Source: Macrostomum lignano (taxonomy: Eukaryota). Taken from it: 64,000 nucleotides of DNA. The notes under the pieces were generated by a model, which made no database searches, was not told where the DNA came from, and saw only the letters and a list, made by a program, of their open reading frames with translations. The number at the start of each line of letters is the position of its first letter. Positions within the stretch are counted from its first letter, which is position 1. Both the position numbers and the translations under genes were made by a program. The DNA lies in contig NIVC01002876.1 of NCBI GenBank assembly GCA_002269645.1, forward strand, positions 1 to 64,000. Direction: 5' to 3'. This document shows positions 3,291-52,539 of this stretch, one piece after another.

Positions 3291-3492
3291 GACAAGCGGA
3301 GGGTGCTGAAGGATTGAAGGCATGGGGAAGGGGCAAGCGGAGGGTGCTGAAGGATTGAAGGCATGCGGAAGGGGCAAGCGGAGGGTGCTGAAGGATTGAA
3401 GGCATGGGGAAGGGGCAAGCGGAGGGTGCTGAAGGATTGAAGGCATGGGGAAGGGGCAAGCGGAGGGTGCTGAAGGATTGAAGGCATGGGGA
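3291..3492 (+). repeat. 41-bp G-rich minisatellite (GAAGGATTGA family, array 1), ~5 units
   Basis: Unit caagcggagggtgctgaaggattgaaggcatggggaagggg; flanked by a ~75-bp direct repeat (3196-3276 and 3494-3566). Confidence 0.95.
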
Positions 3493-4313
3493 ACTATACA
3501 CAATAGCAACATGTCGGGGCCACCTATTTGTCGAACGGATAATTAATTTTGTAATTACGCTAAATTACAAGCGGTCCTGGCCTTTTTAGTTTTTTTTCGT
3601 TTTCCCCTATCCAAATCTCTTTAATTATTCTCCCTGTCGACTGGACACACAGTCCTCGTACCCTGGGAATCTAGGCGGATACCGCGGGGATGACACATTC
3701 CGATGAGTCGTACCCAAAGATTATATATACACAAGGTGGGCCACTCATTAATCACTTATGTGACCATAGAGGCTATAATGTGAATACATAATTTTTCACA
3801 AATTTTGCACTTGAACATAATTTTGCAACTCGCGACAGCGCGAAAATCAACTACTGAACTCAATTTCGTCAGTAGTCTCTGCAGTGCAGGGAATATAAGA
3901 TCTATGGTCGTACCCTACACCACCAGCTTCCTCCATTCAAAACACCCCATCGGCGCTCTTTGTTTGAAACCATTCATGCATAAAAAAATTTCCACACCCT
4001 CCTATCCTCCTATCCATAAATTTACATTTCCACACCAATGTAAATTATAATTTTAATCTCTGTGTAAAAATTCAAAACAGCGCGCGCTTTTCGAACCTCG
4101 ATGACAATGTAAATAATCAATTTGATGACCCTAGAATAAGGAAAATAGGGTAAATTATTGTTAACTTTGTCTAAATTACTGCACACATCAATTCGATGAT
4201 TTAAAAACTGCATTTAAGTAGTCAATGAAGCACGAGCGTAAGTGGAACTGATCAGTGTAACAGATAAACTGTCTTGAGTTGATTTTGATCAATTTCGATC
4301 TATTTAACCATGA

Positions 4314-4538
4314 TCAATATGTCATATTTTCGTAAACAAGGCGGCAGAGGAAAGCTAGTTTATTCTTAGTCAGTTTCATATTGCACTGTCTAAATGCCTT
4401 CATGACGCAGTCGCCGCAGTCGTCAGGGAGCGAGATCGAACATTTAAGTGAAATACTCTTATCTGCGCAGCTGGCCTCCACTCGGTGCAGGAGTAGGCAG
4501 GTGGCTAACATGAACGTCAAGTTGAAGAGTCGAAGCAT
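4314..4538 (-). CDS. Small secreted cysteine-rich peptide, copy 1 (74 aa)
   Basis: MLRLFNLTFMLATCLLLHRVEAS signal-like N-terminus followed by C-x8-C-x7-C-x2-C-x7-C-x12-C. 5'UTR intron GTGAG (4628) to TTGCAG ends 2 nt before the ATG. TATATAAAAG at ~4772-4763. Paralog at 9626-9847. Confidence 0.75.
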   Translation of the reverse strand: MLRLFNLTFMLATCLLLHRVEASCADKSISLKCSISLPDDCGDCVMKAFRQCNMKLTKNKLAFLCRLVYENMTY

Positions 4539-4762
4539 TTCTGCAATTTGCTGCAAGAGGTGGCGATTGGTTTTATTAGCAAGATAATAAATCAATTAGT
4601 TGACAGGTATTAGAATTAAGCCGCTCACCTTTTTGGTACTCGTATTATGGTTTACTATGCAAGAGTAGAAATTTCTTCCGTTTAAATCAGGCTCTTCTAA
4701 TTTCTGAAAGAAATAGGAATTATTTATGTTAGTTTCGTTTTCTCGACCAAGCACAAGCTAAG

Positions 4763-4772
4763 CTTTTATATA
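4763..4772 (-). promoter_or_regulatory. Candidate TATA box of peptide copy 1
   Basis: TATATAAAAG on the minus strand ~230 bp upstream of the ATG; degenerate (CTACAGAAG) at the aligned position in copy 2. Confidence 0.45.
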
Positions 4773-4936
4773 CTGTAAAGACATTTTTGCCTGCAAGGAA
4801 TGCGCAAAGCTACTGAATTGTCTATGGAAAATCCAACTTGAAAAGTTACAAAAATCGATTTTTTTCGTTTCCAAAGTTTCCTGGCCCAAGGCAAGGTTTG
4901 TTGAAATTTTTATGCCAAATTTTACTGGAAACGAAT

Positions 4937-5586
4937 GGTGCTGAAGGATTGAAGGCATGGGGAAGGGCAAGCGGAGGGTGCTGAAGGATTGAAGGCATGG
5001 GGAAGGGCAAGCGGAGGGTGCTGAAGGATTGAAGGCATGGGGAAGGGGCAAGCGGAGGGTGCTGAAGGATTGAAGGCATGGGGAAGGGGCAAGCGGAGGG
5101 TGCTGAAGGATTGAAGGCATGGGGAAGGGGCAAGCGGAGGGTGCTGAAGGATTGAAGGCATGGGGAAGGGCAAGCGGAGGGTGCTGAAGGATTGAAGGCA
5201 TGGGGAAGGGCAAGCGGAGGGTGCTGAAGGATTGAAGGCATGGGGAAGGGCAAGCGGAGGGTGCTGAAGGATTGAAGGCATGGGGAAGGGGCAAGCGGAG
5301 GGTGCTGAAGGATTGAAGGCATGGGGAAGGGGCAAGCGGAGGGTGCTGAAGGATTGAAGGCATGGGGAAGGGGCAAGCGGAGGGTGCTGAAGGATTGAAG
5401 GCATGGGGAAGGGGCAAGCGGGGGGTGCTGAAGGATTGAAGGCATGGGGAAGGAGCAAGCGGAGGGTGCTGAAGGATTGAAGGCATGGGGAAGGGGCAAG
5501 CGGATGGTGCTGAGGGATTGAAGGCATGGGGAAGGGGCAAGCGGAGGGTGCTGAAGGATTGAAGGCATAGGGAAGGGGCAAGCGGT
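4937..5586 (+). repeat. 40-41-bp G-rich minisatellite (GAAGGATTGA family, array 2), ~16 units
   Basis: Same unit as array 1; lies upstream of peptide copy 1. Confidence 0.95.
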
Positions 5587-6810
5587 GGTTGATAGACAAC
5601 TGATAATCTTCAGTAGCCAATCGATGCGAACGGGGGCTTCACGGAGCAAAACAGTGCCCCCCCCCCAAAAAAATTAAAAGCAGACCAACAATCCAGAGTT
5701 TTATTCATCCATGGTTTAACTCAAGACTAAATACCTAAGTGTATTGATATTGGTCTAACTTTTCTAAAGCAGGATGAATATACAAAACTTTATCGTACAT
5801 GTACATGAACTGTATTGTATATCGTACGGCATACTACTTTTATTGACTGTTTGTTATTTAGTACGATTTAATTAATATCTGTTTTCATGCATGTTTTAAG
5901 GCGTTGGGTCCCAATCCCAGTTAGTATCCACAGTGATACATACGACTGCCACTCTGAACCGAGCCACCAGGCCTCGTCCCTTAGACTTTGTCCGCCTCTG
6001 GATGGTGCGGTAGCTGACGTTGCGGCCAAGATCTATAGACATATCTATAGACATATCTATAGACAGCGGGCCCGGGTTGTTTGAAAGTACACGCCAGAGG
6101 CACGGCTGTCACCAGTCACCTGTGCAGGAGTACACCCGGTGAAAACTCCCACTAACGAGACGGGACTCCCGGTGTGTAGCAGACGAAGGTTCTTGACCCC
6201 AACTGTGCCAGAAATGGCCGATTAAGGGACTCTATGCGAGGCATACAAGGACAGTCAGTGCTGGAAACGAGGACTTTTGCATAGGGGGGGGGGTCTTTTA
6301 CCTGGTGAGCGGTTTTAGACTACAATTCCCTCCTAAGCACCAGGATTCCAAGGGTGGATAATACGTAACGCCATCCTAATGTTTTCTCCCTCTTAGATGG
6401 GCTCGATGCGGCAGGGGATGGGGAAGTGCAGATCCCAGGGCTCTCTCGTGGTGCACATTCTACGGGGACTTATTTAGAAGTATTTTTAATGCTATACGAT
6501 TATTTGGTAAAATTCGACTTATACTCGGTGATTCTCCACTCTGATCCTCAGCTTCCATTCCGTGCCCTGCGACAGACGCACTCACTATTCACATTTCATA
6601 CCACGTCCATAGTAAATAAGTAAACAGACAGAAGCAAACAAACTGAATATCTATGCCCTGAACTGCCGGCCTTGAACTTGGCCTTAACCGCTCAGTTAAT
6701 TATGAGAATTAAAACGGAATTGATAAGTTAAGATTGAAAAATTAGGAGATGATAACCAACGGGGGGCGGGCTGATCATTCCTAAGGACAGCGCAACAGAA
6801 AAAAGATACC

Positions 6811-8270
6811 TTGCTGCTGTTGTTGTTGTTGTTGTTTCCGGCCGGTCAGTCCGGGGGGCGGGTCTGTGCCCCGACCTTCTTCAGAAAGTCCACCATCCGC
6901 CTGCAACTGTCGTTGAGCGCTTGTAGGCTCGGGTTATTGCCAAGGTGCCGGGCTCTGGCTTGTTGATGTGCACGGCAGATCTTTATGAGATGATCCTGGT
7001 CCTCGTCGGCTTCGCCGCAGTGCAGGCACGTTGGGCTGTCAGCTTGGCCGATGCGGTGGCGGTACTACTGGAGCAAGGGAGAGTGACCGGTGCGGAGCTG
7101 AGCAAGTGTAATCTCGTCTTTTCTGGTGAGCTGTCCTTTAGGTCTGGCGCCGCTGCCAGTGGTTAGGCGGTGCGTGGTGCAATGCAGGTCCGTGCTGTAA
7201 TCTGCTTTGAAACGGGACTTGGCGGAGCGGTCAATCGCCGCTGTAGCCGCAGCCAGGCTGATTTAGAGTGGGACTGATCAAGAGTCGAGCCGGCTTTGAC
7301 TGTCACGTCCGCGCATTCGTTGAATTGGAGTCCAGCATGGCCAGGCACCCATTGAAGGTCAATGTGCGTTGAGGTCGAGATCGAGAAGAGGAGCTCCCAA
7401 GTCGTGCAGCAGCCCCGAGATCGCGCTTTCGCAGGGCCTTGTTGGAGGGAGAGAAGGAACGATTGGGAGTCAGTGAGGCACCTGATGCGGTTTGGCATTT
7501 GAGCCGAGTAGACGCGAATGATCGCAGAGAGGCCGAGGCGAAGGGCTTCCTCTTCGGCCTGAAAAGAGGAAGTGATGATCCCGGCTGGGCCAGTGATCTT
7601 TTCCACTACGGTCCGGTTTCGTACAATAGTTACCCCGGTGCCGCCGCCATAGGTGCCGTCCTTAGCCGAGCCGTCCGTCCAGATCTCGACATCCGCAACC
7701 GAGAGCTGGTCGAGCGTCTCGAGGACGGCGAGTTTGCGGATGTGAGGCGGGTCCTCCTGGTTCGTGCTGTTGTTCGTGTTCCTGTAGATGATCACTCTGG
7801 ACGTATCTGTCCATGGCGGCGGTGAGAGGGTGTCTGTGGCGCGCGGGGCTTTGAGAAGGCCGGCGGCCGTGGAGACGTTGATGGCCGTGTTGCGCCAGTC
7901 TTGGCAAACGCTACTTGTTGTCCGTGAGCCCGTAGGCGCGGTCGCAAGGCGAGAGAGCGGAGTGGGCTGTCGTTGCCGGGCGGCCTTTTTGAATAGCCTA
8001 GCGGCCGTGGCTTTCGCGAGGGTCGTCAGGGGGAACAGCTCTGCTTCAGTGAGAAGGGCGTTAGTCGGCGTGGAGCGGCAGCACCGTGTGCATTGAGGCG
8101 CTTCTGCATGGTGCCTTTGGTGATAGTGGCGTGTTGGCGGAAGGTGAGCTGGGAGTTAAAGTGGACTCCGAGTAGGCGCGGATTTCGTCGAAGCAGGGCT
8201 GCTTGTCACAGTGGTTGCACGGTGGCGGCTGCAGTCATGGACCATCAATCTAGAAGAGACACGTCCGGGG
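6811..8270 (-). mobile_element. 5'-truncated non-LTR retrotransposon with RNase H (I/Ingi-like group), degenerate
   Basis: Frameshifted RT C-terminus (PRLLGVHFNSQLTFRQH; TPTNALLTEAELFPL), RNase H (WTDGS..AEEEA..TDSQS..WVPGHAG..NECAD, ORF 7163-7795), C-terminal zinc knuckle CLHCGEADEDQDHLIKIC, and a (CAA)n tail at 6811-6835. Confidence 0.9.
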
Positions 8271-8276
8271 GGGGAT

Positions 8277-8700
8277 GTTAAAGCCGAGAGAAGTTATAGC
8301 TTCGGAAACGGAAACAGTGAAGGGTTCTCCGCTCAGGGCTCAGAAGAGCTCTTATTTATAGCCCTGAGATCGTGAGCCTGATGCGTGATATCGAAGGCTG
8401 TGACTTGTCCTTGACCTCCGTTACCAAGCAAACCTGATGACGTCACTGTGATTGGACGAGAAATTGGGGTGGGACGCAGCGAAGAAAAATGATTTATGAA
8501 GGGGAATTACATAACAGACAGGAAAAGGCTTGGGGAGATAGGGGTCATAAAACTGTCACACGCATGAATGATTTCGAACAATACATGTAGAAAGGAGGTG
8601 GGGTTGGTGCGCGGGGGAGTGGGGTGGGCGATAAGCATGAGTCATCGTGATCACATGGGAAGGATGTAGGGTCCGCAAAAATTAGTGGGGGCCCATGACG
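8277..8700 (-). mobile_element. Possible solo LTR or promoter-bearing element fragment
   Basis: Begins TGT where the LINE is truncated. Minus-strand TATAAATA (~8360) with CCAAT (~8450) and TGACGTCA (~8437) upstream. The distal boundary and any TSD are not resolved. Confidence 0.35.
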
Positions 8701-8984
8701 TGCCTACATCAGTTTGTTAAAAATGTAGAATATCTTTCTATGAGTCGCACCCTTTCTACCCACCTTCCTCATTCTCTTCAACCACCCCATCTCCGCTCTT
8801 TGTTTGAAAATATTCATGCAGAACAAATTTTCAACGCTTCTTATCTCTGGAATGTAAATTATATTTAATATCTCTATGCAAAATTTCGAATTCGCGCGCT
8901 TTTCGAGCCTCCTTTGCTGCGACCTCCAACCCATTTTTTAGCCAATCAGAGCAGGGCTGGTGCTCAGTTGCTAGACAACGCGGT

Positions 8985-9055
8985 TCACAGACGGGTCACG
9001 GATGGGTCACGGACGGGTCACGGACGGGTCACGGACGGGTCACGGACGGGTCACG
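8985..9055 (+). repeat. 11-bp tandem repeat (gggtcacggac)n, ~6 units
   Basis: Direct reading. Confidence 0.9.
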
Positions 9056-9149
9056 GTTACTCTTCCACTTCTTGGACAACCAATCCAAATGCCCGCGCTA
9101 CCTTCGAGTTCCCTGTGTGTATTAGTTTAGCTTAGAAGGAATGAGCTCT

Positions 9150-9370
9150 GTGTGCACCCTGGCGCACATCCGACGAGAGGCATTGCTGCCCATTCCGCCG
9201 ACTCCCCTGAGCAGGCACACAAGCGCGCGGATACGTACGCAGTCATTCGCACAGGCATACACTCACACAGGAGTGTACAGCGGCCCTAACTTTATTTATC
9301 GTTAGGCATGTACACTTCACTGTGCTATGGGGGTTGGTCCTCAATGACGCTAATTGCACGAGCAGACACA
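9150..9370 (-). mobile_element. SINE family A, 5'-truncated copy
   Basis: Reverse complement is closely similar to 61720-61945 (taacgataaataaagttagggccgctgt..gatacgtacgcagtc..ggggagtcggcggaatgggcag). Confidence 0.85.
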
Positions 9371-9625
9371 ACAATGAACTACAATGATCGCTTATTGGGC
9401 TTAAACTCATTTTTAAGATAGGAAAATGAGATACGAGCGTATTTATGTCAACTTTTGACAAAATTTGACACACGTCGATCCGATATCATTTCAAAAACTG
9501 CAGTACGTAGCCAATAAAGTGCGAGTGTAAATCAAACTGAAAGTTCTACATATTCAAACTGTGTGCCTTAACTTTGATCAGTTTTGATTTATTTCAAACA
9601 TTCAAATATACGAGAGCTCATTGTG

Positions 9626-9847
9626 TCATTGTACGGTTGAATTTGCCGCAGCGCAGAGAAAAGCTATTTTTCGAGACGCCAGTTTCAGATTGCACTGTTC
9701 AAATGCCTCCATGACGCAGTCGCCGCAGTCGTCAGGGAGCAAGATCGAACATTTAAGTAAAATACTCTTATCTGTGCAGCTGGCCTCCACTCCGTGCAGC
9801 AGCAGGCAGGCGGATAACAGCAAGGTCAAGTTTAGGAGTCGAAGCAT
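9626..9847 (-). CDS. Small secreted cysteine-rich peptide, copy 2 (73 aa)
   Basis: MLRLLNLTLLLSACLLLHGVEASCTDKSILLKCSILLPDDCGDCVMEAFEQCNLKLASRKIAFLCAAANSTVQ. All six mature Cys and the acceptor AG 2 nt before the ATG are conserved with copy 1; the donor and TATA are diverged. Confidence 0.72.
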   Translation of the reverse strand: MLRLLNLTLLLSACLLLHGVEASCTDKSILLKCSILLPDDCGDCVMEAFEQCNLKLASRKIAFLCAAANSTVQ

Positions 9848-10242
9848 ATCTGTAATTTGTTGCAAGCAAGTGCCGATTGATTTATTAGCAATAGAACAAA
9901 TCGACAGGAATAAGCGGCTGCCTAAAAATTTCTTTCGTTTATATTGACTACTCAAATTTTGAGGACACTGTAGATTTATAAAGATCTAACTCCAGCAAAA
10001 AAGCTAATTCTATACCTAAGGAATTTCTGAAATTCTAAATAGGAATTATCTGTGTTAGTTTAGGTTTCTCGGTTAAACACAAGCTAAGCTTCTGTAGTGC
10101 AAAAACACATTTTTGCTGGCAAGGAATGCGCAAAGCTATGTCTTTGAAAAAATCCAATTTGGACAGCTACTTAAATCGATTTTTTATCTTCCAAAGTTTT
10201 CTGCGCTCGATGCAAATGAAAATTTTATTGAAAACGAAGGGT

Positions 10243-10471
10243 AAGGGGTAAGCGGTGGGTGCTGAAGGATTGAGGGCATGTGCAGTGGAATAGGTAAGTG
10301 GTGGTTGCTGAAGGATTGAGGGCATGTGCAGTGGAATAGGTAAGCGGTGGGTGCTGAAGGATTGAGGGCATGTGCAGTGGAATAGGTAAGTGGTGGTTGC
10401 TGAAGGATTGAGGGCATGTGCAGTGGAATAGGTAAGCGGTGGGTGCTGAAGGATTGAGGGCATGTGCAGTG
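10243..10471 (+). repeat. 46-bp minisatellite (GAAGGATTGA family, array 3), ~5 units
   Basis: Unit gctgaaggattgagggcatgtgcagtggaataggtaagcggtgggt; upstream of peptide copy 2, same left flank as array 2. Confidence 0.95.
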
Positions 10472-11920: not shown

Positions 11921-13382
11921 GATAGCTTCGATGCCCCACCTGTTGCTGTCGACGAGCCTGCATCCAGTTCCCACTTGAGACTGAGTCCTATTCGTATGCA
12001 TCGTGTAGCAGGTATTTGGTGCATCGCTGCAAACAACCATGAAGAGCTCGGTGATATTGCTTGTGAAGAACAAGCCGGTGACAATGCTGGTGACCGCCAA
12101 GTCAATGATCAAAGCGGCTATCAACATGGTGAAAAAACTGTCGAGTACTGCGGCGACCAAGCCGGCTACGAACCTGGCGATCATATCGGTGACAATTTGC
12201 ATGACCAAGCCGACGAGCAAGCGTGTGAAAGATGTGTAGTTCATCCGGTTCGTCTTCGTCATGCAGCAGGTATGTGACGCATGTCTTCAACAGTGGATGG
12301 TTGCCACGGGATCTGTGGTTGGCGCGCACTACAGGGTTGCGGAAGAGAATAATAACAAGAGGGACCAAAGGCCGAGAAGTAGGAAAAGCAGTGTCAGTGG
12401 TCATAGCATGTTTCTTCGGAGTCGTTGCAGTCACGAAGGCAGTCTTCGGTCGGAGCGCGGTTGCAAGTTGGCTGTCGGAACCTTGTCTCGGGGGGCAGGC
12501 GCGCACTCGGCGTTTCGTCGATTGCCTGCTGGCTGACGCCGGCGCCCCGGATTCGGCCGGCGGCGTGGCGTTCATTCGCGACCTGGCCTTGAAGCGCGCC
12601 CTGAGACGCTAAATGCGTATTCTGTTGTTGTTGTTGTTATTGTTTATTAACTTTGTTTATCTGTTTCCAGAAGTGTGGTCTATTCAAACTTGTTTAGTTC
12701 TTTTTGCCATTTTCCGCGCTCTGAGTGTTACTTCTCCCGTAGGCTTGGCATCACCGTTAGCAATAGTGTCAGATTGTATCTTTGACACGCGCAGCTAGTG
12801 GGCATTGCTATTCTAAAACTACGCGCTCGTACTATCTAATATTAAGGTTGTTATCATTTTTATTGCTAGATGGAATTAACGCTCAGCACGTGCACCATCG
12901 TTCATATCAACTAAAATATCTGAACTTCCTCACACACATTACCGATTCCGGAACCAGAATCGGTTCGGATCTTCCAAGAAAAAAGCAGTATGTATAACAT
13001 AACTATTTAACTTTGTTGAATTTTTTAATACCAATTAACAGCCTCACTTTGCACAATTTTTTAAATTTCTTCTTGGTTATTGCCATTAAATAATTAAAAT
13101 ATGTAATGTGCAGTACGGCATGCTAATTTTATTGACTGTTTGTTATTACTGCCCCCCTTGACCCCGCAATGCAGTGCCATTGACAAATATCATGTTCCAG
13201 GATTTATGGCAGTAGCTGCCCGCTAATCTGCGGGCTGTTGAACAACAGTTTCACATGCGAGATATAATTAGGAAAAGCTTCGTTTTCATCAAATGAAAGT
13301 GTCTATAATTACAGGGTATTAATATACTCGTACTATTGAATATTTTATGCCAAATTTTATTGGAGACGAGAGGCGCTAAAGT

Positions 13383-15423
13383 ACTGAGGGGATGGGGAAG
13401 GGGTAAGCGGTGGGCTCTGAAGGATTGAGGGGATGGGGAAGGGGTAAGCGGTGGGCTCTGAAGGATTGAGAGGATGGGGAAGGGGTTCAAGCCGTGGGCT
13501 CTGAAGGATTGAGAGGATGGGGAAGGGGTAAGCGGTGGGCTCTGAAGGATTGAGAGGATGGGGAAGGGGTTCAAGCCGTGGGCTCTGAAGGATTGAGAGG
13601 ATGGGGAAGGGGTTCAAGCCGTGGGCTCTGAAGGATTGAGAGGATGGGGAAGGGGTTCAAGCCGTGGGCTCTGAAGGATTGAGGGGATGGGGAAGGGGTT
13701 CAAGCGGTGGGCTCTGAAGGATTGAGGGGATGGGGAAGGGGTTCAAGCGGTGGGCTCTGAAGGATTGAGGGGATGGGGAAGGGGTAAGCGGTGGGCTCTG
13801 AAGGATTGAGGGGATGGGGAAGGGGTTCAAGCCGTGGGCTCTGAAGGATTGAGAGGATGGGGAAGGGGTTCAAGCCGTGGGCTCTGAAGGATTGAGAGGA
13901 TGGGGAAGGGGTTCAAGCCGTGGGCTCTGAAGGATTGAGAGGATGGGGAAGGGGTTCAAGCCGTGGGCTCTGAAGGAGTGAGGGGATGGGGAAGGGGTAA
14001 GCGGTGGGCTCTGAAGGATTGAGAGGATGGGGAAGGGGTAAGCGGTGGGCTCTGAAGGATTGAGAGGATGGGGAAGGGGTTCAAGCCGTGGGCTCTGAAG
14101 GATTGAGAGGATGGGGAAGGGGTTCAAGCCGTGGGCTCTGAAGGATTGAGGGGATGGGGAAGGGGTTCAAGCGGTGGGCTCTGAAGGATTGAGGGGATGG
14201 GGAAGGGGTTCAAGCGGTGGGCTCTGAAGGATTGAGGGGATGGGGAAGGAGTAAGCGGTGGGCTCTGAAGGATTGAGGGGATGGGGAAGGGGTTCAAGCC
14301 GTGGGCTCTGAAGGATTGAGAGGATGGGGAAGGGGTTCAAGCCGTGGGCTCTGAAGGATTGAGAGGATGGGGAAGGGGTTCAAGCCGTGGGCTCTGAAGG
14401 AGTGAGGGGATGGGGAAGGGGTAAGCGGTGGGCTCTGAAGGATTGAAGGGATGGGGAAGGGGTAAGCGGTGGGCTCTGAAGGATTGAGGGGATGGGGAAG
14501 GGGTTCAAGCCGTGGGCTCTGAAGGATTGAGGGGATGGGGAAGGAGTAAGCGGTGGGCTCTGAAGGATTGAGAGGATGGGGAAGGGGTTCAAGCGGTGGG
14601 CTCTGAAGGATTGAGGGGATGTGGAAGGGGTTCAAGCGGTGGGCTCTGAAGGATTGAGAGGATGGGGAAGGGGTTCAAGCGGTGGGCTCTGAAGGATTGA
14701 GAGGATGGGGAAGGGGTTCAAGCCGTGGGCTCTGAAGGATTGAGGGGATGGGGAAGGGGTTCAAGCGGTGGGCTCTGAAGGATTGAGAGGATGGGGAAGG
14801 GGTTCAAGCGGTGGGCTCTGAAGGATTGAGGGGATGGGGAAGGAGTAAGCGGTGGGCTCTGAAGGATTGAGGGGATGGGGAAGGGGTTCAAGCTGTGGGC
14901 TCTGAAGGATTGAGAGGATGGGGAAGGGGTAAGCGGTGGGCTCTGAAGGATTGAGGGGATGGGGAAGGGGTTCAAGCCGTGGGCTCTGAAGGATTGAGGG
15001 GATGGAGAAGGGGTTCAAGCCGTGGGCTCTGAAGGATTGAGGGGATGGGGAAGGGGTTCAAGCCGTGGGCTCTGAAGGATTGAGGGGATGGAGAAGGGGT
15101 TCAAGCCGTGGGCTCTGAAGGATTGAGAGGATGGGGAAGGGGTTCAAGCCGTGGGCTCTGAAGAATTGAGGGGATGGAGAAGGGGTTCAAGCCGTGGGCT
15201 CTGAAGGATTGAGAGGATGGGGAAGGGGTTCAAGCGGTGGGCTCTGAAGGATTGAGAGGATGGAGAAGGGGTTCAAGCGGTGGGCTCTGAAGGATTGAGG
15301 GGATGGGGAAGGGGTTCAAGCCGTGGGCTCTGAAGGATTGAGGGGATGGGGAAGGGGTTCAAGCGGTGGGCTCTGAAGGATTGAGAGGATGGGGAAGGGG
15401 TTCAAGCCGTGGGCTCTGAAGGA
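13383..15423 (+). repeat. 41/43-bp G-rich minisatellite (GAAGGATTGA family, array 4), ~2 kb
   Basis: Units ctctgaaggattgaggggatggggaagggg(taagcg|ttcaagccg)gtggg; shares the left flank ttttatgccaaattttattgga.acga with arrays 2 and 3. Confidence 0.95.
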
Positions 15424-16289
15424 TCAGTACTGGTAAATATTTGTATACATCCAAAGAAGAATAACAAAGTCAAAAGATGCTCATTAATTTTTGCTCAAAA
15501 GAATTGTTGTACAATTGTATATTCATACGGACCTTAATATGAAATGCAGTTGCAGGTGTCATGAACAGCTGCGTAATTTCATGTTGTGCACAGTCATAAT
15601 CTACATAGGAAATAAATTCGTATGCAGAACTTAAATATGACAGAAAATACGTTTTTTATTAGTGGCTACTTGCCACTTCCTTTTGATTAAAACAATTATA
15701 GATGCGTACGATACGAAAATTAAATGAAAGTTGCATTGAATAGAAGTTTTAATGACAAAAAATAAAAAAATTACAATTTGCAAGGACAAAATGTAAAGAT
15801 ACGAGCGTAACAGCAATTTCTAAAATGTTTATGGCCGAACTTGATTATTTAAAAGAAAAAATAAAATCATGAAAAAACAATCATAGTATATCATAATTAA
15901 ATTATAATTATTTACACTTTAGTATGCTATAATATATATTATGTACGTTTTCGGGACTCAATAGTTGTTTTTGGCCATAGACATGATCAGTAGGCAAACA
16001 GGTTAGCTCAGACTAAATACCTATAAAATATGATAGGTCAATACTGTTACGATCGTAATAAGTGTATTGATATTGGTCTAACTTTTGTAAAGCAGTATGA
16101 ATGTACAAAATTTTACCTTGCATGCACTGTATTGTATTGTTCGGGCAGTATTACGACATGCTACTTTTATTGACTATTTGCTATTTAGTCTGACGTCGAA
16201 GACGTCGGATTGAACATTCTAATCATTTTAAGCTATTTTTCAACCTAATCTACCACGAATGAAGCTGAGTGAGCGTAGCATGTCTCAAA

Positions 16290-17583: not shown

Positions 17584-20500
17584 AACTGGCATTGGTTGAA
17601 AAAACTGGCACTGGCTCAAATAAACTGGCACAGGCTCAAATGAACTGGCACTGGCTCAAATAAACTGGCACAGGCTCAAATGAACTGGCACTGGCTCAAA
17701 TGAACTGGCACTGGCTCAAATGAACTGGCACAGGCTCAAATAAACTGGCACAGGCTCAAATAAACTGGCAGTGGCTCAAATAAACTGGCACAGGCTCAAA
17801 TGAACTGGCACTGGCTCAAATGAACTGGCACTGGCTCAAATGAACTGGCACAGGCTCAAATAAACTGGCACAGGCTCAAATAAACTGGCACTGGCTCAAA
17901 TGAACTGGCACTGGCTCAAATGAACTGGCACAGGCTCAAATAAACTGGCACAGGCTCAAATAAACTGGCACTGGCTCAAATAAACTGGCACAGGCTCAAA
18001 TGAACTGGCACTGGCTCAAATAAACTGGCACTGGCTCAAATGAACTGGCACAGGCTCAAATGAACTGGCACTGGCTCAAATGAACTGGCACTGGCTCAAA
18101 TGAACTGGCACAGGCTCAAATAAACTGGCACAGGCTCAAATGAACTGGCACAGGCTCAAATGAACTGGCACTGGCTCAAATGAACTGGCACAGGCTCAAA
18201 TAAACTGGCACAGGCTCAAATAAACTGGCACTGGCTCAAATAAACTGGCACTGGCTCAAATGAACTGGCACTGGCTGAAATAAACTGGCACAGGTTCAAA
18301 TAAACTGGCACTGGCTCAAATAAACTGGCACAGGCTCAAATGAACTGGCACTGGCTCAAATGAACTGGCACTGGCTCAAATAAACTGGCACAGGCTCAAA
18401 TGAACTGGCACTGGCTCAAATGAACTGGCACTGGCTCAAATGAACTGGCACAGGCTCAAATGAACTGGCACAGGCTCAAATAAACTTGCACTGGCTCAAA
18501 TAAACTGGCACAGGCTCAAATAAACTGGCACTGGCTGAAATAAACTGGCACAGGCTCAAATGAACTGGCACTGGCTGAAATAAACTGGCACAGGCTCAAA
18601 TAAACTGGCACTGGCTCAAATGAACTGGCACTGGCTCAAATGAACTGGCACTGGCTCAAATAAACTGGCACAGGCTCAAATAAACTTGCACTGGCTCAAA
18701 TAAACTGGCACAGGCTCAAATAAACTGGCACTGGCTGAAATAAACTGGCACAGGCTCAAATGAACTGGCACTGGCTGAAATAAACTGGCACAGGCTCAAA
18801 TAAACTGGCACTGGCTCAAATGAACTGGCACTGGCTCAAATGAACTGGCACTGGCTCAAATAAACTGGCACTGGCTCAAATGAACTGGCACTGGCTCAAA
18901 TGAACTGGCACTGGCTCAAATAAACTGGCACTGGCTCAAATGAACTGGCACAGGCTCAAATGAACTGGCACTGGCTCAAATGAACTGGCACAAGCTCAAA
19001 TGAACTGGCACTGGCTCAAATGAACTGGCACTGGCTCAAATAAACTGGCACTGGCTCAAATGAACTGGCACAGGCTCAAATAAACTGGCACAGGCTCAAA
19101 TAAACTGGCACTGGCTCAAATAAACTGGCACTGGCTCAAATGAACTGGCACTGGCTCAAATGAACTGGCACTGGCTCAAATAAACTGGCACTGGCTCAAA
19201 TGAACTGGCACTGCCTCAAATGAACTGGCACTGGCTCAAATAAACTGGCACTGGCTCAAATGAACTGGCACAGGCTCAAATAAACTGGCACAGGCTCAAA
19301 TGAACTGGCACTGGCTGAAATAAACTGGCACTGGCTCAAATAAACTGGCACAGGCTCAAATAAACTGGCACAGGCTCAAATAAACTGGCACAGGCTCAAA
19401 AAAACTGGCACAGGCTCAAATAAACTGGCACAGGCTCAAATAAACTGGCACAGGCTCAAATGAACTGGCACTGGCTGAAATAAACTGGCACAGGCTCAAA
19501 TGAACTGGCACAGGCTCAAATGAACTGGCACTGGCTCAAATGAACTGGCACTGGCTCAAATGAACTGGCACTGGCTCAAATGAACTGGCACAGGCTCAAA
19601 TGAACTGGCACTGGCTCAAATGAACTGGCACTGGCTCAAATAAACTGGCACTGGCTCAAATGAACTGGCACAGGCTCAAATAAACTGGCACAGGCTCAAA
19701 TAAACTTGCACTGGCTCAAATAAACTGGCACAGGCTCAAATAAACTGGCACTGGCTGAAATAAACTGGCACAGGCTCAAATGAACTGGCACTGGCTGAAA
19801 TAAACTGGCACAGGCTCAAATAAACTGGCACTGGCTCAAATGAACTGGCACTGGCTCAAATGAACTGGCACTGGCTCAAATAAACTGGCACTGGCTCAAA
19901 TGAACTGGCACTGGCTCAAATGAACTGGCACTGGCTCAAATAAACTGGCACTGGCTCAAATGAACTGGCACAGGCTCAAATGAACTGGCACTGGCTCAAA
20001 TGAACTGGCACAAGCTCAAATGAACTGGCACTGGCTCAAATGAACTGGCACTGGCTCAAATAAACTGGCACTGGCTCAAATGAACTGGCACAGGCTCAAA
20101 TAAACTGGCACAGGCTCAAATAAACTGGCACTGGCTCAAATGAACTGGCACTGGCTCAAATGAACTGGCACTGGCTTAAATAAACTGGCACTGGCTCAAA
20201 TGAACTGGCACAGGCTCAAATAAACTGGCACAGGCTCAAATAAACTGGCACAGGCTCAAATAAACTGGCACTGGCTCAAATGAACTGGCACTGGCTCAAA
20301 TAAACTGGCACAGGCTCAAATAAACTGGCACAGGCTCAAATAAACTGGCACAGGCTCAAAAAAACTGGCACAGGCTCAAATAAACTGGCACTGGCTGAAA
20401 TAAACTGGCACAGGCTCAAATGAACTGGCACTGGCTGAAATAAACTGGCACAGGCTCAAATAAACTGGCACTGGCTCAAATGAACTGGCACAGGCTCAAA

Positions 20501-23500
20501 TGAACTGGCACTGGCTCAAATGAACTGGCACAAGCTCAAATGAACTGGCACTGGCTCAAATGAACTGGCACTGGCTCAAATAAACTGGCACTGGCTCAAA
20601 TGAACTGGCACAGGCTCAAATAAACTGGCACAGGCTCAAATAAACTGGCACTGGCTCAAATAAACTGGCACAGGCTCAAATGAACTGGCACTGGCTCAAA
20701 TGAACTGGCACTGGCTCAAATAAACTGGCACTGGCTCAAATGAACTGGCACTGCCTCAAATGAACTGGCACTGGCTCAAATAAACTGGCACTGGCTCAAA
20801 TAAACTGGCACTGGCTCAAATGAACTGGCACTGGCTCAAATGAACTGGCACTGGCTCAAATAAACTGGCACTGGCTCAAATGAACTGGCACTGCCTCAAA
20901 TGAACTGGCACTGGCTCAAATAAACTGGCACTGGCTCAAATGAACTGGCACAGGCTCAAATAAACTGGCACAGGCTCAAATGAACTGGCACTGGCTGAAA
21001 TAAACTGGCACTGGCTCAAATAAACTGGCACAGGCTCAAATAAACTGGCACAGGCTCAAATAAACTGGCACAGGCTCAAAAAAACTGGCACAGGCTCAAA
21101 TAAACTGGCACAGGCTCAAAAAAACTGGCACAGGCTCAAATGAACTGGCACTGGCTCAAATAAACTGGCACAGGCTCAAATGAACTGGCACTGGCTCAAA
21201 TGAACTGGCACTGGCTCAAATGAACTGGCACTGGCTCAAATGAACTGGCACTGGCTCAAATGAACTGGCACTGGCTCAAATGAACTGGCACTGGCTCAAA
21301 TGAACTGGCACTGGCTCAAATAAACTGGCACTGGCTCAAATGAACTGGCACAGGCTCAAATAAACTGGCACAGGCTCAAATAAACTTGCACTGGCTCAAA
21401 TAAACTGGCACAGGCTCAAATGAACTGGCACTGGCTCAAATGAACTGGCACTGGCTCAAATAAACTGGCACAGGCTCAAATGAACTGGCACTGGCTCAAA
21501 TGAACTGGCACTGGCTCAAATGAACTGGCACTGGCTCAAATAAACTGGCACAGGCTCAAATGAACTGGCACTGGCTCAAATAAACTGGCACTGGCTGAAA
21601 AAAACTGGCACAGGCTCAAATGAACTGGCACTGGCTCAAATGAACTGGCACAGGCTCAAATGAACTGGCACTGGCTCAAATGAACTGGCACTGGCTCAAA
21701 TGAACTGGCACAGGCTCAAATAAACTGGCACAGGCTCAAATAAACTGGCACTGGCTCAAATAAACTGGCACAGGCTCAAATGAACTGGCACTGGCTCAAA
21801 TGAACTGGCACTGGCTCAAATAAACTGGCACAGGCTCAAATGAACTGGCACTGGCTCAAATGAACTGGCACTGGCTCAAATGAACTGGCACAGGCTCAAA
21901 TAAACTGGCACTGGCTCAAATGAACTGGCACTGGCTCAAATAAACTGGCACAGGCTCAAATAAACTGGCACTGGCTGAAATAAACTGGCACAGGCTCAAA
22001 AAAACTGGCACAGGCTCAAATGAACTGGCACAGGCTCAAATGAACTGGCACTGGCTCAAATGAACTGGCACTGGCTCAAATAAACTGGCACAGGCTCAAA
22101 TAAACTGGCACTGGCTGAAATAAACTGGCACTGGCTCAAATGAACTGGCACTGGCTCAAATGAACTGGCACTGGCTTAAATGAACTGGCACAGGCTCAAA
22201 TGAACTGGCACTGGCTCAAATGAACTGGCACTGGCTCAAATGAACTGGCACAGGCTCAAATAAACTGGCACTGGCTCAAATGAACTGGCACTGGCTCAAA
22301 TAAACTGGCACAGGCTCAAATAAACTGGCACTGGCTGAAATAAACTGGCACTGGCTCAAATGAACTGGCACTGGCTGAAATAAACTGGCACAGGCTCAAA
22401 TGAACTGGCACTGGCTGAAATAAACTGGCACAGGCTCAAAAAAACTGGCACAGGCTCAAATGAACTGGCACTGGCTCAAATAAACTGGCACAGGCTCAAA
22501 TGAACTGGCACAGGCTCAAATGAACTGGCACTGGCTCAAATAAACTGGCACTGGCTCAAATGAACTGGCACAGGCTCAAATAAACTGGCACTGGCTGAAA
22601 AAAACTGGCACAGGCTCAAATGAACTGGCACTGGCTCAAATGAACTGGCACAGGCTCAAATGAACTGGCACTGGCTCAAATGAACTGGCACTGGCTCAAA
22701 TGAACTGGCACAGGCTCAAATAAACTGGCACAGGCTCAAATAAACTGGCACTGGCTCAAATAAACTGGCACAGGCTCAAATGAACTGGCACTGGCTCAAA
22801 TGAACTGGCACTGGCTCAAATAAACTGGCACAGGCTCAAATGAACTGGCACTGGCTCAAATGAACTGGCACTGGCTCAAATGAACTGGCACAGGCTCAAA
22901 TAAACTGGCACTGGCTCAAATGAACTGGCACTGGCTCAAATAAACTGGCACAGGCTCAAATAAACTGGCACTGGCTGAAATAAACTGGCACAGGCTCAAA
23001 TGAACTGGCACTGGCTGAAATAAACTGGCACAGGCTCAAATAAACTGGCACAGGCTCAAATGAACTGGCACTGGCTCAAATGAACTGGCACTGGCTCAAA
23101 TGAACTGGCACAGGCTCAAATGAACTGGCACAGGCTCAAATGAACTGGCACTGGCTCAAATAAACTGGCACAGGCTCAAATAAACTGGCACTGGCTGAAA
23201 TAAACTGGCACAGGCTCAAATGAACTGGCACTGGCTGAAATAAACTGGCACAGGCTCAAATAAACTGGCACTGGCTCAAATGAACTGGCACTGGCTCAAA
23301 TGAACTGGCACTGGCTCAAATAAACTGGCACTGGCTCAAATGAACTGGCACTGGCTCAAATGAACTGGCACTGGCTCAAATAAACTGGCACTGGCTCAAA
23401 TGAACTGGCACAGGCTCAAATGAACTGGCACTGGCTCAAATGAACTGGCACAGGCTCAAATGAACTGGCACTGGCTCAAATGAACTGGCACTGGCTCAAA

Positions 23501-24200
23501 TAAACTGGCACTGGCTCAAATGAACTGGCACAGGCTCAAATAAACTGGCACAGGCTCAAATAAACTTGCACTGGCTCAAATAAACTGGCACAGGCTCAAA
23601 TGAACTGGCACTGGCTCAAATGAACTGGCACTGGCTCAAATAAACTGGCACAGGCTCAAATGAACTGGCACTGGCTCAAATGAACTGGCACTGGCTCAAA
23701 TGAACTGGCACAGGCTCAAATAAACTGGCACAGGCTCAAATGAACTGGCACTGGCTCAAATAAACTGGCACAGGCTCAAATAAACTGGCACTGGCTCAAA
23801 TAAACTGGCACAGGCTCAAATGAACTGGCACTGGCTGAAATAAACTGGCACAGGCTCAAATAAACTGGCACAGGCTCAAATGAACTGGCACTGGCTCAAA
23901 TGAACTGGCACTGGCTCAAATAAACTGGCACTGGCTCAAATGAACTGGCACTGGCTCAAATGAACTGGCACTGGCTCAAATAAACTGGCACTGGCTCAAA
24001 TGAACTGGCACAGGCTCAAATAAACTGGCACAGGCTCAAATGAACTGGCACTGGCTGAAATAAACTGGCACAGGCTCAAATGAACTGGCACTGGCTCAAA
24101 TGAACTGGCACTGGCTCAAATAAACTGGCACAGGCTCAAAAAAACTGGCACAGGCTCAAATGAACTGGCACAGGCTCAAATGAACTGGCACTGGCTTAAA
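17584..24200 (+). repeat. 6.6-kb satellite of a 20-bp unit t[ag]aactggcac[at]ggctcaaa, ~330 units
   Basis: Perfect 20-bp register throughout; two common dimorphic positions plus rare variants. Confidence 0.99.
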
Positions 24201-24372
24201 TTTAGCCTATATAATATGAGGCATAAAACGGGCCCTCGAAAACAATGATGTGACCAGTATCCAGTGCTGAAGAACTTATACAGCCAGGTGTTATAAGCCA
24301 TGGCATTGCTGCCTAAAGGGCACAATGGGAACAGACTGTAAAGGGCGACAATATCTATGGGTTGCTGTTTTT

Positions 24373-26129: not shown

Positions 26130-27430
26130 CTAAGTCATCGACTTTGTGACCCACCGTCTAATCGGAATGTGAGTGTACTGATGCTGGGCGTTCCAAGTCT
26201 CATCGCTCTTGTAAATCTTACAAAGCAACGAAATAAATAAAGCATTTAGAAGCACTGAGATGGCTAAAAATACGCCAAACAATATGGCAACAACATTCGG
26301 TGCAAAGCTTGGCCCTTTGACGTGGACAACGTGCAGTCTGACAGCCTTGACGACCACTTTACCTGTTGGCAAATGTACCGAGCACGACACGGAGTAGTCG
26401 CCAAGCAACGCTCCCGGAGCCACCTCCAGGAGGCCGTTGCGTGCCAGCAGATGCTCGCGCGACGCGTGCGGCACGGACCAGTTGGCGTAGGGCGCCGGAT
26501 TGCTGGCACCGAGGCAGGTCAGGTACTGGCCGCGCGACAGAGAAGCGTCCAGTCGATTTGGGCTACCACTGCCACTTTCCGGTGCTGAAAAAAATGATTT
26601 CACTGGTCGTAAGTCATAAATTAGTAATACCAGCTAAAAACACTCAGCCTCATCATTAAAGTCTCACCAACGAGCGACTCCCCGATCACAACCTCCTCGC
26701 TGATGAAGCGCACGCTGATTCGGACGCTGTCTCGCTGAGAGCCGAACACGTTTCGCGACACGCAAGTGACCAGCAGGCCGTCCAGCTCAGGATCGGCAGT
26801 TAGCTGACGGGTGTACACCAACGTCCTGTCGTCGTCGCTTGTAGTCACGCTGCCTAGCACGGAGATGTCGGAAACGTACACCACCAGCTCCACGCTGGGG
26901 TTGGCTGTCCGTCCGGTGCAGCGAATCTCGAATGGCTCCTTGTCGGCCAGCCAGCTCACCTGGCGGCCCCGGCTGATGAGTTGCACGGTCGGCGGCTCCG
27001 GCGGCAGGCCGACAATCTGTTGACGCTCGCCAGCCACCGCCGTGGCGTTCCCGCGCTTGAATCTGGCTCGGCAGGACAGCACGCCGGAATCGGCTGGTTG
27101 AGCCATCAGCCGGACAGTGGCGAAGTGCGGCGACAAGCTGGCCACAATGTCCGATCGCTCGGACCAGGAGTTCAAGAGCTGGTGCTCTCCTGTACCAGCC
27201 GACGAGTTGCCACGCTGCAGCAGGATCACCGCGCGACCATTCAGCCCGATGGAGACCTCGGTGAGGTTCTCCGACTGCGGCCCGTGGCACATGACGGTCA
27301 GGCGGGAGCCCTCGAGTACCGGGCCAGCCGGCAGGGTCTCCAATTGGATTCCAATCCAGTTAGCATCCGCTGACACAGCTGCGGTCAGTGAGATGATTGC
27401 CGCAATTATACGCGTAACTGGTTTATTCAT
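26130..27430 (-). CDS. Ig-superfamily type I membrane protein (signal peptide, 3 Ig-like domains, TM)
   Basis: Exons 27430-26668 and 26584-26130, phase-1 GTGAG..TTTTCAG intron of 83 bp. Ig signatures LTVMC..W..DSGVLSC, IRC..LVTCVSRN, LTC..W..DYSVSC. TM VAILFGVFLAISVLLNALFISLL. A further donor (GTGGGT ~26152) may extend the gene. Confidence 0.85.
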
Positions 27431-27859
27431 TCTCGAGGCCAGAGGTGCCTACATGGGCCGCTATAGTAGAACTGAAATGCTAACAGTGCTGCTGGGGCTT
27501 CTATTTATTCGAAAATCCTTTCTCTTACTTTTCTCTTTTCTCTCTGAACCATGCTTTCTAGCCCCCAGCTAGCTAGCCCTCAGCTAATGAGAGGGGGAGG
27601 CTGTGGTCAGCTTATTGCGTGCACACATTTGGCTCTGCGTGACTGGGTGCATAGTTTGTTAAAATGTACACTCGCTAATAGGTACATTACGTTGTGGAAG
27701 AAGTGCATAGTCGCCATTTTCTAATAATTAGATATGCAAGCGAATGTGAAATAACTGCATGGTAGCCACCCCTAGCTTTGAAATTTATCAAACAAAAAAC
27801 TATACAGACAATTTCGCTCAGTCAACTAATAGTAAAACTGCTTGAATTTCCTGAGCACA

Positions 27860-45810: not shown

Positions 45811-49755
<3,945 letters not shown>

Positions 49756-50159: not shown

Positions 50160-50360
50160 GAACTTAACCCTTACTATAGACCAAGACCTAAGCTAAACTC
50201 TAATCTAAACTCAAAACTGAACTAAACCTAAAAAACTAACTTAAAATGTAACCCTAACCTAAAACTAACCTTAACCTAACCCTGACCTAAACCGAATCCT
50301 ACCCTAAACCTAACCCTAACCTAAAACCTGATCTTAACCTAAACTCTATCCTAAACCATA
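50160..50360 (+). repeat. Degenerate telomere-like (aaccct/aaccta)n tract
   Basis: cctaaccctaacc-type hexamers between SPRTN and THOP1. Confidence 0.7.
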
Positions 50361-51060: not shown

Positions 51061-52503
51061 TCAGCTACTCAGGCACAAATCCAAGTGAACATTGATGTCG
51101 GACTCTGGCATTTGCCTGCTGCAAACTGGACAGCTGACCAGCTGCTGGCTGACTGCTCCTATGCTGGCGGCGCCACCGACGCCATTAAGAGTGCCACTGA
51201 CGCCATTAGGAGCGCCACCGACGCCCTTAGGACCGCCATCGACGCCATTAGGAGCGCCACCGAGGCCATTAGAAGCGCCACCGATGCCCTTAAGAGCGCC
51301 ATCGACGCCATTAGGAGCGCCACCGATGCCATTAGGAGCGCCACCGACGCCCTTAAGAGCGCCACCGACGCGACTAAGAGCGCCACCGACGCCATTACCA
51401 GGGCCACCGACGTTGTTATAGCTAGAGCTGCCACCGCTGCCGCCAAGTCGAATGCCGACACCAGGAAACGCGGCATCGGCGGTGCCGACGGCAGCAGACA
51501 CGGCGGCGCTAACAGAGTCGGCAGAAGCGACGCAAACGGCGCCATCTGATTCAGCAATAGCAGGTCGCCAAGATTTCGACTCCACAGAACCTACAGAAGG
51601 ATCTGGGCCGCTGCTAGCAGGCGAGGCGGGAATGAACTGCCGTATGTCCGTCTGTCCAGCAGCCGGCCGCTTCGCTGGCCGCTCCCGTTGCTCATCTTTG
51701 CCGCCGTCGGCAGCCCGACTATTCTTCTTAGCCAACGGCTTCTTCTTATCGGCGAATCCTTCGGGCTCCTTGACTTTGACGAATCGGCCGCCGCAGTCGG
51801 CCTGATGACTGCGCCACCAGGTGTCGTTAGGCCCGGGCGCCCGGTTCATGGACCGGCGCACCCAGCCGTGGAATGGCGGCCGGTTCCGGCAGGGCCCCTC
51901 GCAGCGCCACCAGTGCTGCTTGTAGACGGCGACCTCGTCGTGAAAGCTGTGATAGACGGTGATGTTGGTGCCGGCAGCCGAGTTGATGCGGCGCATGTGC
52001 GCCAGAAACTGCGGCCCGTGCCCGTCACGGTCGCGATTATTGGCGGTGACAAACAGGTGCGCGTGAATCATCTCGTGCAGCAGGGTTTCGACTAAGTCGC
52101 GTCTGGGCCGCAGTTTGAGCAGCGGCTCGCTCAGTTTAATGCAGCAGAGGCCGCCGCGGCCCTCGTAGCAGCACAGGCCGGCGCACAGGGTCATGCGGGG
52201 GCTCCACTTCACCTCAACTGCGACCAGGCTGCCGCCGAAGTAGCGCCCGTTGAAGTCCAGAAACAGGGCGTGCACATTGGGCGTGGGGTCCACCAGCTCC
52301 CAGTTGGGGTCCACTAGCGAGCCGCCCAACTCGTTGCTATTGGCAACGGCTGCCTTGCCTCTCTGCTTCGAGTCATCCTCCTCCTGCTCCTGGGAGGCCA
52401 GGCGCAGGCACAGCTCTCGGTCGGCCGCCTCCGACTGCTGCTCCTCCTGGCGGTCAAGCAGCTCGGCTTCCAGCTGCCACTGAAGCGCCTCTTCTGGGCT
52501 CCA
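51061..52503 (-). CDS. SPRTN: SprT-like (Spartan/DVC1) DNA-dependent metalloprotease; exon lacks its own ATG
   Basis: 1443-nt open exon after acceptor ctcttcag. SLVDPNWELVDPTP, VKWSPRMTLCAGLC, LHEMIHA (HExxH), PIP-like QTDIRQF, SHP-like FPGVGIRLGG, UBZ CPVC..INVHLDLC. Confidence 0.93.
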   Translation of the reverse strand, partial: WSPEEALQWQLEAELLDRQEEQQSEAADRELCLRLASQEQEEDDSKQRGKAAVANSNELGGSLVDPNWELVDPTPNVHALFLDFNGRYFGGSLVAVEVKWSPRMTLCAGLCCYEGRGGLCCIKLSEPLLKLRPRRDLVETLLHEMIHAHLFVTANNRDRDGHGPQFLAHMRRINSAAGTNITVYHSFHDEVAVYKQHWWRCEGPCRNRPPFHGWVRRSMNRAPGPNDTWWRSHQADCGGRFVKVKEPEGFADKKKPLAKKNSRAADGGKDEQRERPAKRPAAGQTDIRQFIPASPASSGPDPSVGSVESKSWRPAIAESDGAVCVASADSVSAAVSAAVGTADAAFPGVGIRLGGSGGSSSYNNVGGPGNGVGGALSRVGGALKGVGGAPNGIGGAPNGVDGALKGIGGASNGLGGAPNGVDGGPKGVGGAPNGVSGTLNGVGGAASIGAVSQQLVSCPVCSRQMPESDINVHLDLCLSS

Positions 52504-52539
52504 CTGAAGAGATTGGAGAGAGATCTGGTTATGCGAAAC

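Follow-up and report, generated by a model that had tools for sequence, protein, structure and literature searches.

Do two short open reading frames (ORFs) on the minus strand of a Macrostomum lignano contig represent a pair of genes for secreted peptides, or are they non-functional frames carried on duplicated, repeat-rich DNA? The frames lie within the first 64,000 nucleotides of contig NIVC01002876.1 (assembly GCA_002269645.1), a stretch referred to here as the window, where a preliminary description had drawn attention to a tandem pair of similar six-cysteine peptides. Judged by their sequence features, the frames are probably tandem duplicates of one gene, restricted to its lineage, that encodes a small secreted peptide rich in cysteines, and a pair of real genes, at least one of them functional, is, to about the same degree, the reading to be preferred.

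Two paralogous reading frames in a tandem duplication

The two frames, copy 1 and copy 2, would each encode a signal peptide followed by a mature chain of just over 50 residues. The coding sequences (CDS) and their predicted parts are located as follows:

4317-4538, minus strand: CDS of copy 1, with the ATG at 4538 and the stop codon at 4316-4314, 74 amino acids, MLRLFNLTFMLATCLLLHRVEASCADKSISLKCSISLPDDCGDCVMKAFRQCNMKLTKNKLAFLCRLVYENMTY
4473-4538, minus strand: predicted signal peptide of copy 1, MLRLFNLTFMLATCLLLHRVEA
4317-4472, minus strand: predicted mature peptide of copy 1, 52 amino acids, with the six-cysteine core at 4344-4469
9629-9847, minus strand: CDS of copy 2, with the ATG at 9847 and the stop codon at 9628-9626, 73 amino acids, MLRLLNLTLLLSACLLLHGVEASCTDKSILLKCSILLPDDCGDCVMEAFEQCNLKLASRKIAFLCAAANSTVQ
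9782-9847, minus strand: predicted signal peptide of copy 2, MLRLLNLTLLLSACLLLHGVEA
9629-9781, minus strand: predicted mature peptide of copy 2, 51 amino acids, with the six-cysteine core at 9653-9778

Both leaders begin with MLRL, continue with a 14-residue uncharged hydrophobic stretch (mean Kyte-Doolittle hydropathy of 2.1 and 2.4 in the two copies) and end in H-R-V-E-A or H-G-V-E-A, with S-C directly after the predicted cleavage site. The leader substitutions between the copies exchange one hydrophobic residue for another, and a rule-based check found the elements of a signal peptide in place (a basic n-region MLR, a 14-residue h-region, valine at position -3 and alanine at position -1). 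Each copy contains six cysteines with the identical spacing C-x8-C-x7-C-x2-C-x7-C-x12-C, and the segment LPDDCGDCVM shows no difference between them. The preliminary description had claimed a tandem paralogous pair with a hydrophobic leader ending in VEA/S and one common cysteine scaffold, and this was reproduced by the ORFs, by tblastn and by a regular-expression search. The short mature chain and the even number of conserved cysteines are in keeping with small secreted cysteine-rich peptides in general. The paralogues differ in charge: one is basic (net charge +3, isoelectric point (pI) 8.6) and the other is acidic (net charge -1, pI 4.9), a shift that results from K-to-E and R-to-E changes.

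Within the window the scaffold was found only at these two positions, based on tblastn and on a relaxed regular expression applied to all six frames, and composition-preserving shuffles gave 0.13 matches to the cysteine pattern per window. When the ATG-initiated ORFs of the window were crudely screened for a signal peptide with several cysteines after it, five ORFs were returned, and the canonical leader was combined with the common six-cysteine spacing only in copy 1 and copy 2.

The two ORFs are part of a collinear, diverged direct duplication and lie approximately 5.3 kb apart. In each unit the 3' flank is followed by the CDS, by approximately 170 nt of low conservation, by an upstream block and by an array of one minisatellite family (UTR, untranslated region):

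3901-5121, minus strand: duplicated unit 1, with the 3' flank, the gene, the upstream block and the start of a 41-bp minisatellite (array 4937-5585)
8737-10464, minus strand: duplicated unit 2, with a 3' flank that is longer by approximately 530 nt, part of which is an 11-bp array (8981-9056), and with a related 46-bp minisatellite (10247-10471)
4711-4857, minus strand: upstream block of copy 1, 71-83% identical to the block of copy 2, a putative promoter or 5'-UTR exon
10034-10178, minus strand: upstream block of copy 2, the counterpart of 4711-4857

The minisatellite family is represented by four arrays (3293-3493, 4937-5585, 10247-10471, and 13385-15424) whose 41-46 bp units share GGTGCTGAAGGATTGA(A/G)GGCATG, and two of these arrays are located approximately 400 nt upstream of the peptide genes. 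A stretch of approximately 34 nt that adjoins the array is also common to 4901-4935 and 13336-13369. The two units are separated by a GC-rich insertion that contains a retroelement RNase H fragment (7166-8155, minus strand), the best named relatives of which come from the barnacle Amphibalanus amphitrite; they are uncharacterised proteins with 32-41% identity, and one of them also carries a reverse-transcriptase domain.

This setting raises the question of whether the frames belong, as its cargo or as a component, to a mobile or satellite-associated repeat, such as a minisatellite-bearing element, so that the frame would be encoded by the repeat and would not be a host gene. The distance of approximately 400 nt between each copy and an array of the minisatellite family, the existence of related arrays at 3293-3493 and 13385-15424 and the RNase H fragment between the copies are in line with this explanation. 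However, only two copies are present in 64 kb, they are tandem and collinear, and no trace of the gene, of the upstream block or of a third degenerate unit was detected at the arrays 3293-3493 and 13385-15424. Furthermore, neither peptide has a Pfam match to a transposon protein and the RNase H element is a separate insertion between the units; a repeat-encoded frame is considered very improbable.

Upstream of both start codons, a branch-point-like motif and an acceptor AG are conserved within otherwise badly conserved sequence and may belong to an intron in the 5'-UTR. The candidate splice signals are:

4572-4582, minus strand: branch-point-like motif TTGCTAATAAA of copy 1, conserved, approximately 30 nt upstream of the acceptor AG
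4541-4542, minus strand: candidate acceptor AG of copy 1, two bases before the ATG (attgcag/aa ATG), where a putative 5'-UTR intron would end
9881-9891, minus strand: branch-point-like motif TTGCTAATAAA of copy 2, the same motif as in copy 1
9850-9851, minus strand: candidate acceptor AG of copy 2, two bases before the ATG (attacag/at ATG)
4623-4628, minus strand: candidate donor of copy 1 (AAAAAG/GTGAGC), strong, which would give an 88-nt intron
10010-10015, minus strand: best candidate donor of copy 2 (TTAG/GTATAG), which would give a 166-nt intron

The conserved acceptor before the ATG that had been proposed in the preliminary description is retained as far as the AG two bases upstream is concerned, but where copy 1 has a more distal TTGCAG, copy 2 has TTGCAA.

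An acceptor in this position could also mark an exon of another or a longer protein, in which the ATG would be internal and the hydrophobic stretch would be a membrane anchor, or the cysteines (including the CxxC motif) would bind metal inside the cell. The open frame indeed extends upstream of the ATG, by 19 codons in copy 1 and by 36 in copy 2, the conserved acceptor lies immediately before the ATG, and the arrangement C-x8-C-x7-C-x2-C is also found in the published consensus of the plant B-box. On the other hand, the upstream in-frame sequence is unconserved (47-55% identity, with indels, over alignment columns 301-400), the methionine, basic residue, hydrophobic core and V-E-A before S together make up a complete signal peptide, no Pfam zinc-finger or B-box match and no histidine ligands were found, and the core is not followed by a credible conserved donor. 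An exon of a larger protein is accordingly considered unlikely. A splice donor after the last cysteine was also considered as the cause of the divergent C-terminal tails and was rejected, with only weak, non-homologous GT sites in this region.

Conservation of the core and signs of gene conversion

The preliminary description had set diverged flanks against conserved cysteines and a conserved LPDDCGDCVM core, a contrast that is evident in the alignment of the two copies. In codons 1-56 of the CDS, 151 out of 168 positions match (approximately 90%), whereas 235 out of 360 positions match in the upstream flank and 197 out of 361 in the downstream flank (Fisher P = 5e-10 and 6e-17, respectively, compared with the CDS). 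Alignment identity is 92-94% in the central 100 columns, 65% in the upstream 400 columns and 55% in the downstream 400 columns, and 12 gap openings occur in the 800 flank columns compared with none in the 195 nt from the ATG to the sixth cysteine (P ~0.05). In a neutral simulation that scattered the observed 27 substitutions randomly over 195 nt, the ATG and the open frame survived in 24% of the trials and all six cysteines in 9%; the frame and the six cysteines survived together in 2.6%, and in 0.7% when the hydrophobic leader was included. The GC content at the first, second and third codon positions (GC1/GC2/GC3) is 0.43/0.36/0.59 in one copy and 0.52/0.40/0.58 in the other, compared with 0.34 in the flanks, and GC3 reaches 0.69 and 0.82 in two bona fide exons from other parts of the window. 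A structured RNA was tested as the cause of the core conservation and was rejected (folding z-scores of +1.05 and +0.11, no Rfam match).

A number of observations weigh against a functional gene pair. The ratio of non-synonymous to synonymous substitution (omega, Nei-Gojobori method) is 0.79 over codons 1-65 with a bootstrap interval of 0.36-2.11; it is 0.50 in the leader and 1.13 in the mature part, and none of the seven nucleotide differences in codons 20-56 is synonymous. A ratio near 1 was one of the findings that, according to the preliminary description, would refute its claim, and the values of 0.79 and, for the mature part, 1.13 come close to it, with an interval too wide to settle the matter. 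Divergence at synonymous sites is lower than in the flanks (P ~0.005), so that protein-level purifying selection does not explain the identity of the core, and this points to gene conversion of a tract of 110-150 nt as the simplest explanation. A net 5-nt indel after the last cysteine shifts the tails into different frames relative to each other; as protein, therefore, only the leader and the six-cysteine core are conserved, and the N-x-T sequons that occur in both tails are coincidental or convergent. The expression signals are likewise inconsistent between the copies. The candidate donors at 4623-4628 and 10010-10015 are not homologous in position. The TATA motif TATATAAAA (4764-4772, minus strand) is present in copy 1 only; copy 2 has no TATA at the aligned position and a different TATAAAT near 9969-9975. 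An AATAAA at 9588-9593 (minus strand), 33 nt past the stop codon, is present in copy 2 only; the aligned hexamer of copy 1 is AATAGA, and no canonical poly(A) signal was found within approximately 250 nt past the copy 1 stop codon. Finally, no homologue was identified in any of the searched collections, and the locus is dense in repeats, with tandem arrays that score at least 100 making up 38% of the window.

These observations lend support to an explanation in which a non-functional frame lies on duplicated, repeat-rich intergenic DNA and the core is a recent conversion tract, with the frames and the cysteines intact because the tract is young. An omega close to 1, core differences that are all non-synonymous and the frameshifted tail would be in keeping with such a frame, as would TATA and poly(A) motifs that each occur in one copy only, the lack of homologues in the searched collections and an antisense frame that is open too in both copies; the synonymous divergence far below that of the flanks is the signature of conversion. 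What this explanation has to leave to chance is the joint retention of the ATG, the frame, the six cysteines and the hydrophobic leader (P ~0.007-0.03). A conversion tract, moreover, need not coincide with an ORF that has a signal peptide, an even number of cysteines and GC3 > GC1 > GC2, and the branch-point and acceptor motifs, which lie outside the high-identity core, are conserved too. A non-functional frame is thus a real possibility, to which roughly one chance in a few is given, and a pair of genes with at least one functional copy continues to be preferred.

Two side observations concern the reading frames themselves. The antisense strand is open at 4381-4587 (plus strand, 68 codons) and at 9621-9947 (plus strand, 108 codons), and the third codon positions of these frames coincide with those of the sense frame. 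The antisense products lack a signal peptide and any recognisable feature, and here too every difference between the copies changes an amino acid; the open antisense frames are most likely a by-product of the sense frame. In copy 1, which has no canonical poly(A) signal shortly past its stop codon, an AATAAA is located inside the CDS (4363-4368, minus strand, codons K-N-K), and the arrangement is reversed in copy 2.

Relatives, predicted fold and putative mode of action

The peptide family had not been recognised in the preliminary description, and this assessment holds in all collections that were searched. A Pfam scan (E <= 10) gave only noise for copy 1 (DUF2195, 0.012; Marek_SORF3, 0.12) and nothing for copy 2, a word-indexed protein search of 5.8 billion clusters gave no candidate, and a HMMER profile search over 1.84 billion representatives gave three matches, all of which were judged to be spurious. 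These three (duplicated tetraspanin-like, bacterial repeat and ankyrin repeat proteins) are long and repetitive proteins in which several weak stretches add up. An exact-protein look-up in a gene-position index had neither peptide on record, degenerate-motif scans of metagenome, viral and prokaryotic contigs returned motif matches of which none was upheld by tblastn, and a sequence profile search of the PDB returned a single unrelated match (E = 1.5). No papers were found in a full-text literature search with the peptide motifs, and a literature search with the cysteine spacing returned only papers on plant B-box zinc fingers, the consensus of which includes C-x8-C-x7-C-x2-C.

Structure prediction with AlphaFold gave a poor model of the full-length protein (predicted local distance difference test score (pLDDT) of 60.5) and a moderate model of the mature chain alone (pLDDT 79.6, predicted template modelling score 0.58). 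The mature-only model consists of three helices (mature residues 4-13, 16-29, and 36-50). Helices 2 and 3, with the CxxC motif at the start of helix 2, are the same in both runs and agree with the helical CxxC layout that had been suggested beforehand, as far as runs that both rest on an alignment of two sequences can indicate. The first third of the mature chain was predicted as a hairpin in one run and as a helix in the other, which, together with the two-sequence alignment, counts against the proposed fold. Foldseek searches with both models against the PDB and with the mature model against BFVD returned only generic helical fragments, none with an E-value below 1; the best match in the PDB (E = 4.4) was to unrelated helical proteins.

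The pair is best placed as a lineage-restricted, as yet unplaced new sequence family within a known kind of molecule. It resembles generic small secreted cysteine-rich peptides of invertebrates in its signal peptide, a mature chain of approximately 50 amino acids and six invariant cysteines, and also in its tandem duplication, in the fast change of non-cysteine residues next to a conserved leader and scaffold and in an omega near or above 1. These peptides constitute a class and not a homologous family, and no link to any of them in sequence, profile or fold was found.

In shape, disulfide-braced helical peptides appear to be closest according to the predicted model, among them attractin, the Euplotes pheromones and the CHH/ITP peptides with the venom peptides derived from them. 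Attractin of Aplysia and the Er pheromones of Euplotes are secreted, mostly helical peptides of 40-58 amino acids with six cysteines in three disulfides and a neutral to acidic charge, a charge that copy 2 shares. The attractin spacing (C-x8-C-x6-C-x5-C-x6-C-x7-C, without a CxxC) is unlike that of the pair, and membership was rejected with no PDB sequence match below E = 1.5 and no fold match below E = 4.4. The CHH/ITP/MIH superfamily and the HAND toxins have approximately 70 amino acids, six cysteines, a helical fold and a CxxC of the C-D-D-C type at the start of a helix. One cysteine precedes the CxxC and three follow it in CHH, compared with two before and two after in the pair, and the mature chain of CHH/ITP/MIH is longer; with this difference in spacing and no match to the Pfam family Crust_neurohorm, membership was rejected as well.

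The preliminary description had also suggested a saposin-like peptide. Saposin-like proteins are helical, secreted and braced by three disulfides, as is proposed for the pair, but they have approximately 80 amino acids, four or five helices and another cysteine spacing, compared with three helices in 52 amino acids in the model. Neither SapB_1 nor SapB_2 was matched in Pfam and no saposin was among the Foldseek matches of the moderate-confidence model, so that the suggestion finds no support in profile, spacing or fold. The B-box zinc finger (C-x2-C-x8-C-x7-C-x2-C-x4-H-x8-H) overlaps with the pair in part, at the four cysteine positions of C-x8-C-x7-C-x2-C. The B-box, however, is intracellular, binds zinc and has histidine ligands and an additional N-terminal CxxC, whereas the pair has a predicted signal peptide and no histidine ligands; given also the lack of a Pfam zf-B_box match, the likeness was judged to be a coincidence.

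A mode of action can be proposed for the pair. The whole CDS would be contained in one exon, probably after a short 5'-UTR intron with its acceptor two bases before the ATG. The product would be directed to the endoplasmic reticulum by an N-terminal signal peptide of 22 residues, which would be cleaved off after V-E-A, and the mature chain of approximately 50 residues would fold into a compact, mainly helical structure with the CxxC at the start of helix 2 and with three disulfides between the six invariant cysteines holding the fold. A helical mini-protein of approximately 5.5-5.9 kDa would be released and would bind an extracellular target. Constraint would act only on the leader and the cysteine scaffold and leave the tail past the last cysteine free, surface residues would change freely or adaptively (net charge from +3 to -1), and the central 110-150 nt would probably be homogenised between the copies by gene conversion.

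A fast-evolving extracellular binder (a defence or toxin-like peptide or a chemical signal) is favoured over a cationic, membrane-lytic antimicrobial peptide, as the pI values of 8.6 and 4.9 argue against a shared cationic membrane-lytic role. The charge divergence would suit a protein-binding ligand, toxin or signal under diversification or drift. Of the roles named in the preliminary description (antimicrobial, toxin, adhesive or seminal), no single one is picked out by the sequence. As a more tentative suggestion, which is more doubtful than the existence of the gene pair itself, the two copies might be the founder pair of an undescribed family of disulfide-braced, three-helix secreted peptides in which conversion keeps the scaffold and leader alike and diversifying selection changes the surface and the charge.

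The rest of the window and the significance of the pair

The remainder of the window is characterised by large exons, GC3-rich coding sequence and AT-rich intergenic DNA, features that point to an invertebrate whose close relatives are not annotated in the collections searched. A single open frame of 498 codons (51064-52557, minus strand) corresponds to the DNA-protein-crosslink protease Spartan (SPRTN), with a SprT-like domain, a Spartan zinc-binding domain, a repeat rich in G, A, P and N (array 51170-51412) and, at the C-terminus, a zinc finger of the UBZ type. Its protease domain (region 51064-52329, minus strand) shows approximately 68% identity to the human protein and yet is contained in one exon. 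The open frame offers no ATG ahead of the SprT domain, so that the start codon is probably located on an upstream exon. A large exon at 47923-48804 (minus strand, >250 amino acids) belongs to peptidase family M3 (thimet oligopeptidase or neurolysin-like); its best database matches are 44-55% identical, and corals are the only eukaryotes named among the matches, so that the lineage seems to have no near relative with annotation. A 275-codon open frame at 26624-27448 (minus strand) has a sub-threshold match to Ig_2 (23 bits compared with a cutoff of 27) and may be an exon of a gene for a cell-surface protein. A weak tRNA-like Rfam match at 53044-53112 (minus strand, 31.1 bits compared with a gathering score of 29) was not called by ARAGORN and may represent a tRNA-derived repeat or a decayed tRNA gene.

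The periods of the tandem arrays across the window range from 4 to 85 bp. A 6.6-kb satellite array at 17584-24201 consists of approximately 330 copies of the 20-bp unit AACTGGCACTGGCTCAAATG with 93% identity and a strong AT skew. A short interstitial array at 50256-50354 has the 17-bp unit AACCTAATCCTAACCTA and forms a degenerate run of AACCT/TTAGG; TTAGG is the telomeric motif of the arthropod type, and the array is a faint pointer to the source taxon.

Lineage-specific secreted cysteine-rich orphans are common in invertebrate genomes, and given this commonness the general interest of the pair is modest. The locus is a compact case of a young pair of paralogues on which conversion probably acts together with amino-acid divergence. 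If the peptides are expressed, they would represent a sequence family new to the secreted mini-proteins and might also add to them a new helical scaffold, small and rich in disulfides. Such mini-proteins are the usual source of toxins, antimicrobial peptides and pheromones, and their scaffolds are useful as probes and as frameworks for engineering. Should the tentative reading as the founders of a three-helix family be true, the pair would fit a new class of toxin, defence or chemical-communication ligands.

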